From Salpingoeca rosetta (Eukaryota > Protista > Choanoflagellata), in assembly GCA_033442325.1 (NCBI GenBank), contig JAWQFM010000003.1, positions 1,626,175-1,690,174 of the forward strand: DNA of 64,000 bases, read 5' to 3'. The notes beneath the pieces were generated by a model. That model was given only the letters and a program-made list of their open reading frames with translations. It made no database searches and was not told where the DNA came from. Positions within the stretch are counted from its first letter, which is position 1. The number at the start of each line of letters is the position of its first letter. Shown one piece after another: positions 38,560 to 41,500 of the stretch. A program made the translations under genes and the position numbers.

Positions 38560-41500
38560 ATGTATGTGACCATCGCTTACCCGTTTGCGGACGAAGACGT
38601 TGATCTTCAGATCGACAATGAGGCGTCCTTCAAGGTAAGGGAGCAAGTGTTGTGATGTGACCTTTGTACTTGGGTGCTGCTGTGAGTTGACACGCGTCAG
38701 CTTTTATCATGGTCAGCATCAGCCGGGAGGATTTTCGCGTTGCGTGTTGGTCGGCCGTTCTCGCGTCACACACACATACACACATTGATCGCGAGCGTTG
38801 GGAACAACGGCACTCTCATATGGCTGGCTGGCCTGTCTTGTACATTTTCATGCTCTGTATAGACGCTGGGAGAGAAGATCGTGGCGGCCGCTCCCCGTGC
38901 CCTTCCACGAGAGAAGCTCCTCTCCGAGTTCACCGTCGTTGTGAACAGGTGTGTGTGTGTGCGTGCGTGATGGTGACAATGCCGATAATGCTGATGTGGC
39001 AATGTGCTCGGGGTTTGTGTGCAAAGGGACACACATCAGGTGCCTGGTCTGGTCTTGGATGTGTGTCAACGTGTGTGGAGGGGTGCCGACGATGTACCTG
39101 ACTCCCCTTTCCCCAGGCCTGGCTGGCTGCTGACGTCACAACTTGTCACGACAACAACAACCGCGTTCGTGTTGATAGAAACGGCCGCGACCGCGTGCTG
39201 AATCTGACGTTGGAGCAGCCCGTGTCCATCCTTCTGGAGAGCAACGATGCGTTGCAGATGATACCAGGTACGCGTGCATGTGTGTGTGTGTGTGCACTTG
39301 TGGCTGCAGTGGCGGACAAGGTACACACCAACCTGGAGCCCATGTTTGTGTGACCACCACCACCACCACCACCACCACCACCATCACCACTCATCATCAT
39401 CACCATTATCATTTTCATCACCACATGTCTGGTTCACAACCTTCGGCAGGCATCCCGCCATACTTGGTGGACACAGAGGGGCGGCCGCTTCAGGTGCTGA
39501 CCTTCTCGCTGGATGATGATCAGCACACCGTCACGCACATCAACGAGGCCAACTTGCGTCAAATCCTGTACCGGCACGACGTCAAGGACCTACCCGTTGT
39601 TGTCCTCAGCGTCGCTGGTAAGGTGGTTGTGGTGCTAGTGATGCTGCCAGTGGCGCTGGGAGTGCCATCATCTCGTGCACTGCTTTCAATCAATTCCTCT
39701 GTATGTCGTCAACTTTGCAGTTGACAAGCACATGTATGCGTGCGTGTGCGCACGAACAAGTTCGCTCTTCCTGCATTCTCATCATGTGCTGCTTCCCTTG
39801 ACTGACAGGGCCCTTCCGAACTGGCAAGAGTTTTCTCCTCAACTTCATCCTTCGCTACCTCGAGAACGACGGGGTGTGTGGGCGTGTGTGTGTGTGGGCG
39901 TGCGTGTGTGCGTGTGTTGGGGGGTGGTGGGGGTGGTGCGTGCGTGGGCGTGTGTGGGCGTGTGTGGGCGTGTGTGTGTGTGTGTTGGGGGGGGATGTTG
40001 TTGTTGCGTCGGAGCTGTGCTGTTGCTTGAGGGTGTGGTGTTGCGGACAGAAGTGGTTTTCATCCCAGTGAGCATGCGTTGGGTCTCTGCCCTCCAAGTT
40101 GCTGCCTGCGGAGTCGTCCTTGTGTTCTCATCCACAACCTCAACTCCCCGGGCCTTGCTTCCCGTCTCCATCGCGGGGCTAGGCGGACTGGGGCTCGGAA
40201 GCGTCCATGCAGGCTGCAGAAGGCTTCCACTGGCGCCACGGCATTGAGCGCGACACCGTTGGCATGTGGATGTGGAGCAAACCTTTTGTCCGCACCATGC
40301 CGGGCGGTGACCGCGTCGCCGTCATCGTCGCAGACACACAGGTGCGCACTGCATTGCTCGTGTGCGTATGTTCACGTGCTGTAGGGATGTGTGCGTGTGT
40401 GTGCGTGCTTGCGTGTGTGTGCTTGCGTTTACGTGCTCTGTGTGTGTGTGTGTGTGTGTGTGTTAGTGTGCTGTGGTTATGTGTGTGTGTGTGTGTGTGT
40501 TAGTGTGCTATGTTTGTGTGTTTCGTGTTTGATCACTTTCGTGCGTCTGCGGTGCATCGCGCATGCCAGCACGCTCACTGATGCTTCTTCCCATCACGTC
40601 TCCCATTGCCACGAACCAACTGCAGGGCACCTTTGACAAGCACACGGTGATGGCAGAGAACACGCGCATCTTTGCCCTCAATGCCCTCATCTCCTCCCAG
40701 CAGGTCTACAACATCAAGGAAAAGATTTCAGAGGACGTCTTGCAGGTGCGCTGTGCGTGCGTGCGTGTGTGTGTGTTTGTGCTTGTTTCGTTTGTGTACT
40801 TGCGTGCACGGTGCTTTGCCTCGCAATGGCTCTACTGCCATGCATGTTCCGACGAGTACTGAACGCATCAACTTTCTCCTCCGTGCGTATGCACACACAC
40901 CACCACCACACACACACACACACACACACACACGTCCTCCCTTCTTGTTTCTCCCCTGCTTCTGTGCAGCAAATGCATCTGTTTACAGAGTACGGTGCCA
41001 TGGTTGCCCGCACCCTCGAAGGCCAGAAGCCCTTCCAGAACCTCGAGGTGCGCCCCTTCGTCGTCCGTGCTCTCACGCGCCTTCCTTGGCTGCAACCGTG
41101 CTGGATGATGTGCGTTTGTGTGCTCGAAGACACACATGACGCTCACCACAACCTAACAGACACCAACACACAATTACTCAACACATATGTACTTGCTCAC
41201 CTCTTCACCCCGTCTTCTTCACCACCACCACCACCACCACCACCACCATCGTTGTCGTCGTCGTCACCACTTCTGCCGTTGCCATCGTCCCCCTTCCACC
41301 CCCCCCCCAAAAAAAAACCAGTTCCTCATCCGGGATTGGGAGTTTGAGTCGCACGCGCCCGGCGCTGCCGGCGGCCAGGAGTACCTCGACAGCATCCTCG
41401 CCATCTCAGACGGTTCGTGCACACGCGGCAAGAGCGTGGTGGCGGAGGAGAAAGCACGCGCAACCTGTGCTGCATGCGTTCGCACAGGCATTGTGCACGC

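Follow-up and report, generated by a model that had tools for sequence, protein, structure and literature searches.

An N-terminal domain with a predicted ubiquitin-like fold in the atlastin of the choanoflagellate Salpingoeca rosetta

We show that the atlastin gene of Salpingoeca rosetta is transcribed with three small 5′ exons whose product lies in front of the GTPase domain and is conserved in four further choanoflagellate species. Structure prediction supports the view that this product, residues 1-85, is a ubiquitin-like (UBL) beta-grasp domain with an extra helix after alpha1. The gene was found in 64,000 nt of S. rosetta DNA (GCA_033442325.1, contig JAWQFM010000003.1, positions 1,626,175-1,690,174 of the forward strand), which we refer to as the window and whose coordinates are used throughout. 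It comprises 14 exons at 38560-43654 on the plus strand, separated by introns that are all GT..AG, and the 14 exons translate without any difference to PTSG_02516 (P0151), a 613-residue S. rosetta protein that carries the public name "hypothetical protein". Exons were queried one by one, while full-length analyses used this public protein; the translation of exons 1-3 is identical to its residues 1-83. A first-pass annotation of the window, made from the letters alone, had joined the three small exons in frame to the atlastin GTPase at 39450 and read them as a ubiquitin-like domain. The exon coordinates proved exact, with GT..AG introns throughout, and the fold is predicted with high confidence by the analyses described below.

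Transcript, conservation and predicted fold of the N-terminal domain

Four S. rosetta RNA runs were placed on 38396-39900. A 2006-nt contig from a 2011 run (X12) aligns as 38484-38632, 38861-38946, 39177-39264, 39447-39616 and 39808-39868 with no mismatch, and contigs from two other studies (X4 and X5) have the same joins. Stranded raw reads (X21), all in a single orientation, cross the join between exons 1 and 2 (18 reads), exons 2 and 3 (7 reads) and exons 4 and 5 (22 reads); the join between exons 3 and 4 is seen in contigs only, because the raw reads were placed with the repeats of this intron masked. Contigs of three studies and stranded reads thus confirm the three 5′ junctions exactly. 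Read depth in the introns is zero, save for two pile-ups on CA/GT repeats, which contain both strands and foreign loose ends and derive from elsewhere in the genome.

The contigs extend to 38484 and 38497, about 65-75 nt upstream of the ATG at 38560. The 76-nt leader holds no ATG; the mRNA has its first AUG at 38560, in the context GCAGGGATGT. The transcript therefore does not begin downstream, a possibility that the first-pass annotation had raised against its own proposal. A start at M81, the second in-frame methionine of the S. rosetta protein, or near 39425 is rejected in view of the contig 5′ ends and because M81, not being conserved in the other four species, argues against a downstream start. 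Raw-read depth climbs from 5′ to 3′ (~2, 14, 28, 42 and 55 for the leader and exons 1 to 4), and 38566, which lies 6 nt into the coding sequence, is the end point of five molecules among the raw reads. We read both features as an ordinary fall-off near the 5′ end, although a minor shorter transcript may also exist. An 83-nt contig of X5 joins 28 unmatched letters (...GGGGCAG) to 38580 in exon 1, where there is no splice site, and may represent either a chimera or an infrequent alternative 5′ end.

Homologues were recovered in two steps. P0003 of Microstomoeca roanoka came from an exhaustive search of 1.84 billion representatives with exon 10, and a full-length word search with P0003 then returned P0151 and three more proteins at 98-100% query coverage, P0152 (Choanoeca flexa), P0153 (Choanoeca perplexa) and P0154 (Monosiga brevicollis). 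The exhaustive search used exon 10 and not the UBL, so that stand-alone remote relatives of the domain fall outside its scope. All five proteins begin M-Y-[VI]-x-[VI] and align over residues 1-98 with few short gaps. The S. rosetta and M. roanoka sequences are collinear and gap-free from Met1, with 60% identity over residues 1-85, compared with 76% in the G domain, 56% in the helical bundle and 63% in the membrane part. Twelve residues of the domain and its linker are invariant in the five species (M1, Y2, P8, E12, V14, L27, G28, P36, L45, D77, G84 and P86). Gene structure is conserved as well: at the M. brevicollis locus, three introns interrupt homologous codons in the same phases (0, 2 and 1) as in S. 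rosetta, namely after codon 25, in the codon aligned with R54 and in the invariant glycine (G|GC). These matching introns are strong evidence that the three-exon module was present in the common ancestor of the two species. A shorter M. roanoka isoform (P0267, comp15814_c0_seq1) shares the same start and stops after 69 codons, with ~57% of the UBL, and is probably a product of intron retention.

AlphaFold2 modelling of the isolated domain, from an alignment of the five sequences, gave a mean predicted local distance difference test score (pLDDT) of 86.2 and a predicted template modelling score (pTM) of 0.76, with strands at residues 2-6, 13-17, 48-54, 57-60 and 77-83, helices at 24-34 and 41-47, and a short turn before the last strand. 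The two N-terminal strands, the helix and the final strand that had been proposed from the letters match the predicted strands 2-6 and 13-17, helix 24-34 and strand 77-83. Within a larger model of residues 1-475, the domain has pLDDT values of 90-97. The top 50 matches of the domain in a Foldseek search of the Protein Data Bank (PDB) were ubiquitin, NEDD8, ubiquitin variants and UBL or other ubiquitin-fold domains, with a best E value of 1.5e-4, TM scores by target of up to 0.76 and about 10% identity. Independently of Foldseek, VIA-align over 48,161 representative chains gave 72 matches with Z >= 8; of the 50 entries listed, nearly all plainly belong to the ubiquitin superfold, among them the UBX-like domain of Npl4 (9.8), a plexin Ras-binding domain (RBD; 9.6), the TBCE UBL (9.6), ubiquitin (9.5) and the FAF1 UBX domain (9.4). 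On a second look, the top place went to a ubiquitin whose alpha1 is followed by an inserted loop (Z 10.3, root-mean-square deviation (rmsd) 1.9 Å, 76/77 residues), which fits the extra helix at residues 41-47 after alpha1 in the S. rosetta model. Neighbours by shape in the ESM Atlas were likewise mostly clusters that bear ubiquitin or UBL domains. Since the Z scores are tied across sub-families, these structural matches speak to the predicted fold and have no bearing on function.

Family placement, distribution and origin

In sequence, the domain is an orphan. Neither exons 1-3 taken singly nor the five domains matched any Pfam family at cut-off, and no ubiquitin, UBX or UBL profile matched even at E 10; the best ubiquitin-type match, Sde2_N_Ubi, was below threshold (E 0.13) and occurred in M. 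roanoka only. A profile search of the PDB with the domain produced a chance match to ribosomal S13 alone (E 1.1), and a feature search of the ESM Atlas with the M. roanoka domain gave no usable match. The domain ends in IPGIPP, ISGIPP, RPGVPS or RRGVPA, that is, in a single invariant glycine followed by [IV]-P, and then runs onward into the G domain. None of the five proteins has Gly-Gly at the domain end, and a conjugatable modifier of the ubiquitin, NEDD8, SUMO, URM1 or MoaD/ThiS type is ruled out on both grounds. The earlier expectation that a segment lacking di-Gly would be an integral domain is thereby borne out. The loop between beta3 and beta4 reads NRNGRD, ARNGQD, VRASND, IRGDQA and HSAQGLE in the five species; it lacks Phe-Pro-Arg and is not conserved. 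With the FPR loop absent and no match to PF00789, a canonical UBX domain is also ruled out. All five species have an acidic version of the domain, with predicted isoelectric points (pI) of 4.1-5.4. It is best described as an integral UBL, predicted in fold and an orphan in sequence.

Integral (type-2) UBLs, such as those of USP4/USP15 (DUSP-UBL), TBCE/TBCB, UBX proteins, FERM F0/F1 modules and the RBDs of plexins and phosphoinositide 3-kinase (PI3K), offer the closest structural parallels. Like the S. rosetta domain, they have the beta-beta-alpha-beta-beta-beta grasp, are built into larger chains and are never conjugated, and they align to it in VIA-align at Z 8.4-10.3 with an rmsd of ~2 Å over 70-84 residues. 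Unlike them, the S. rosetta domain has an extra helix at residues 41-47 after alpha1 and, in contrast to UBX domains, no FPR loop; identities are 5-17%, and no profile places it in any such family. The absence of detectable sequence relatives means that the domain may be a ubiquitin fold that arose anew or one that has diverged beyond recognition.

Apart from this domain, PTSG_02516 is an ordinary orthologue of atlastin, the GTPase that fuses membranes of the endoplasmic reticulum. PF02263 (GBP) matches the whole protein at E 2.7e-59 and also exons 6, 7 and 10 singly, and GPFRTGKS and DTQG are invariant across a 36-sequence alignment. Against solved structures, exon 10 finds atlastin-1 and atlastin-3 first. 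The AlphaFold2 model of residues 1-475, built from the same 36 sequences (pLDDT 85.4, pTM 0.85), superposes on human ATL1 (3q5e, GDP forms) with a TM score of 0.84 and an rmsd of 2.9 Å over 388 columns at 36-38% identity. In Foldseek, this model matches ATL1 at E 1e-38, the G domain of RNF112 at E 1e-20 to 1e-22 and GBP1/2 at ~1e-17 to 1e-18. It includes a three-helix bundle (helices 387-401, 409-440 and 449-469), beyond which residues 510-559 form a membrane hairpin of two hydrophobic segments parted by DVVELDP, with a 54-residue tail after it. The animal atlastins, human ATL1-3 and Drosophila atl, are built in the same way: GxxRxGKS and DTQG mark a GBP-type G domain, which is followed by the three-helix bundle, the two membrane segments of the hairpin and a tail at the C terminus.

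No second atlastin was found in the S. rosetta genome by scans with PF02263 and with residues 95-613, which matched only the locus at 38560-43654, and a genome scan found no second copy of the UBL. The one other GBP-family exon in the genome, on contig C35 (~666026-666145), was considered as a second atlastin and rejected: its sequence, VILGVSGSIRTGKSFFANQLRGEQKGFHVGHT, has a GBP-like P-loop, reading VILGVSGSIRTGKSFFANQL..GF.VGHT. The open reading frame upstream of that exon has a hydrophobic start that resembles a signal peptide.

How far does the fusion extend? Among 267 atlastin-like proteins, the UBL profile was found only in the five species and in the 69-residue M. roanoka isoform. Across 132 full-length atlastin-like proteins, the median start of the P-loop (G1) is residue 55 (quartiles 49-74); in the five that bear the UBL it starts at residues 136-140, in line with the earlier statement that animal atlastins have short N-termini. 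Further long N-termini do occur (P0160, P0194 and P0104), and these are low-complexity sequence and not UBLs. A word-index search with residues 1-92 of P0003 returned P0003 alone, and one with the five-sequence UBL profile returned the 69-residue isoform alone. Because the former missed four true homologues, these blanks say little on absence elsewhere. The first-pass annotation had called the architecture unfamiliar from elsewhere; the same fusion occurs in five craspedid choanoflagellates and sits unannotated in public protein sets. The protein sequences themselves are already public, named hypothetical or annotated with the G domain only, and in the literature searched we found no treatment of a UBL-atlastin fusion, or of choanoflagellate atlastins, and no integral UBL fused to an atlastin.

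Maximum-likelihood analysis unites the five proteins that carry the UBL in a single clade (100/100), with the species in the expected order. Their clade nests within a 100/99 group that takes in the Salpingoeca urceolata and S. punica atlastins as well, and this larger group is sister to the animal atlastins. The UBL is not present in the atlastins of S. urceolata and S. punica, nor in any animal atlastin examined. In a tree sampled without Hartaetosiga, S. infusionum and acanthoecids, which were not recovered, the simplest reading is that the UBL was gained once, in the craspedid subclade of S. rosetta, Microstomoeca, Choanoeca and Monosiga. Such an event would be a clade-specific, dated domain gain among the closest living relatives of animals.

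Two other unusual architectures were seen among the atlastin-like proteins. In P0249, a 940-residue protein of the tick Ornithodoros turicata, a caspase domain (PF00656) accompanies an atlastin-like GBP domain, and P0001, P0005 and P0012 each have two or three atlastin-like stretches within a single predicted protein.

Possible roles of the domain beside the G domain

The UBL occupies exactly the place of the hypervariable region (HVR) of animal atlastins. Animal HVRs differ from it in being 25-59 residues long, isoform-specific and mostly disordered, with only a beta-hairpin or a helix seen in crystals (PMC8563291), whereas the S. rosetta segment is an autonomous predicted ubiquitin fold of 85 residues that is conserved in five species. 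In human ATL1, the partly ordered HVR touches a neighbouring G domain in the crystal; it makes tethering more efficient and is controlled by phosphorylation (PMC8563291). In the choanoflagellate protein, a 12-residue linker with an invariant G-x-P leads from the UBL into the first G-domain strand, and the linker blocks have pLDDT values of 92 and 88 in the 1-475 model. By ubiquitin topology, the invariant residues P8, E12, G84 and P86 would cluster at the beta1-beta2 loop and the beta5 exit, on the face turned towards the linker. The confidently modelled linker, the pTM of 0.85 and these clustered residues suggest that the UBL is fixed on the G domain and is not a free-swinging handle. We therefore lean, tentatively and at a little under even likelihood, towards a cis-acting or lateral module of assembly or regulation beside the G domain, which we favour over an adaptor for p97 or the proteasome. 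As such a module, the UBL would be fixed to the flank of the G domain, would act in cis or between neighbouring atlastins of one membrane, and could tune oligomerisation, tethering or the GTPase cycle, in what would be a folded and elaborated version of the role of the ATL1 HVR.

Several points weigh against this proposal. The fold is a prediction from five sequences only, and the docking on the G domain is read from pLDDT and pTM alone. A two-chain prediction of UBL residues 1-90 with residues 96-475 returned an interaction prediction score from aligned errors (ipSAE) of 0.00 in two runs, made without alignments or controls, and carries no weight for or against docking. Additionally, the S. 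rosetta UBL is 27-29% identical to those of Choanoeca and Monosiga, and its G domain 57-60%; together with the 60% and 76% seen with M. roanoka, these figures indicate at the sequence level that the UBL is under constraint yet evolves faster than the enzyme core.

A different role, which was also the suggestion of the first-pass annotation, is that of an exposed dock for readers of UBL or UBX domains, such as the N domain of p97/Cdc48, proteasome receptors or UIM/UBA proteins, through which sites of endoplasmic reticulum (ER) fusion would be linked to extraction, degradation or ER-phagy. We consider such a dock unlikely, though worth keeping in view. Functional association of Drosophila atlastin with TER94/VCP and co-precipitation of mammalian VCP with ATL1 have been reviewed (PMC5757295), p97-binding domains stand in the tied top rows of VIA-align (Npl4 and FAF1, given above, and the UBX domain of UBXD7 at 9.5), and the sub-threshold Sde2 match in M. 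roanoka, weak as it is, is to a ubiquitin domain. Against these stand the missing FPR hallmark of UBX domains in an unconserved beta3-beta4 loop, the blank profile searches of all five proteins, and the fact that the rows for UBX, ubiquitin, RBD, FERM-F1 and TBCE UBL domains are tied within one Z unit; moreover, the short and confidently modelled linker suggests that the face at the C-terminal exit may not be free. A narrower proposal, that the UBL works like a UBX domain and gives Cdc48/p97 or a different UBL reader an inbuilt handle, is improbable on our assessment. If it were true, this clade would have hard-wired into one polypeptide an atlastin-VCP partnership that in animals has been shown by co-precipitation and genetics alone, and the fusion would offer a direct physical model for the action of p97 at ER fusion sites.

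The structural ties extend to modules that bind small GTPases: the tied neighbours include plexin RBDs (Z 9.0-9.6), the RBD and ABD of PI3K and the SHANK3 SPN-Rap1 complex, and the UBL could in principle be a Ras-association or RBD-like module that binds a GTPase of the Rab, Arl or Rap type and thereby recruits or activates atlastin. Ties between folds are uninformative on function, however, and no RA or RBD profile matched. Ras-binding faces are typically basic, and a domain that is acidic in five species (pI 4.1-5.4) sits badly with such a face; we regard this role as quite improbable. Hardly any likelihood attaches to the remaining explanation, that there is no functional domain here, either because translation starts at M81 and exons 1-3 are mainly leader or because the beta-grasp is an artefact of a disordered extension. 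The climb in read depth, the five molecules that end 6 nt inside the coding sequence and a fold alignment of only five sequences would fit it. Yet the depth gradient is the usual fall-off near a 5′ end, the ATG at 38560 is the first AUG in contigs that reach 38484-38497, and Met1-Tyr2 is invariant in five species where M81 is not. Amino-acid conservation equals that of the middle domain, intron positions are conserved, and pLDDT is 86-97 over two independent models.

RNF112/ZNF179 (PDB 9jju-9jjx) provides a partial precedent for the architecture. It too is a GBP/atlastin-like GTPase with an N-terminal domain from the ubiquitin world, and its G domain is a structural neighbour of that of PTSG_02516. 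Unlike the S. rosetta domain, the N-terminal element of RNF112 is a RING, part of an E3 ligase, and not a ubiquitin fold; furthermore, RNF112 is an animal paralogue with ~20% identity and not an atlastin orthologue.

In this clade, a short and floppy N-terminal region has been replaced by a folded domain of predicted ubiquitin type. The fusion is of moderate interest, as it bears on the regulation of ER fusion and on domain gain in the sister group of animals, while its practical consequence is modest, given an otherwise ordinary atlastin orthologue whose sequence is already public. S. rosetta is amenable to genome editing, and since it has a single atlastin gene, deletion of the domain should give a clean phenotype.

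Exon map and adjacent repeats

The features of the locus are collected in the table. The intron that follows exon 3 is in phase 1 and splits the invariant Gly84.

Table. Features of the S. rosetta atlastin gene in window coordinates (aa, amino-acid residues)
Feature	Position	Strand	Content
5′ untranslated leader	38484..38559	+	RNA contig 5′ ends at 38484 and 38497; no ATG
Exon 1	38560..38634	+	aa 1-25; start codon, predicted UBL beta1 and beta2; followed by phase-0 intron
Exon 2	38863..38948	+	aa 26-54 (last codon split); predicted alpha1, inserted alpha2 and beta3; followed by phase-2 intron
Exon 3	39179..39267	+	aa 54-84 (both end codons split); predicted beta4 and beta5, UBL end
Exon 4	39450..39617	+	aa 84-140; G-[IV]-P linker (84-86, conserved), first GTPase-domain strands
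Exon 5	39809..39873	+	aa 140-161; G1/P-loop GPFRTGKS
Exon 6	40183..40341	+	aa 162-214; GBP-type G domain as far as DTQ (G3)
Exon 7	40626..40745	+	aa 215-254; G domain
Exon 8	40970..41047	+	aa 255-280; G domain
Exon 9	41322..41412	+	aa 281-311; G domain (FLIRDW)
Exon 10	41620..41801	+	aa 311-371; end of G domain (CFLLPHPG); best PDB sequence matches atlastin-1 and atlastin-3
Exons 11-13	42055-42165, 42507-42702, 42947-43004	+	aa 372-493; three-helix-bundle middle domain
Exon 14	43291..43654	+	aa 493-613 and stop; membrane hairpin aa 510-559, C-terminal tail

Simple repeats occur within and next to the gene. Intron 11 contains a (GTTT)n microsatellite of ~140 nt (42225-42375), and intron 13 a (CA)n microsatellite of ~130 nt (43137-43265). 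Directly 5′ of the transcription start, at 38010-38400, a unit of ~60-70 nt (…aatggaagatgtgatgtcc…ggagaacat.cca) is present twice. The copy at ~38020-38080 precedes a long (GA/GAGACA)n microsatellite at 38080-38165, and the copy at ~38190-38255 precedes a long (CA)n microsatellite at 38255-38395.

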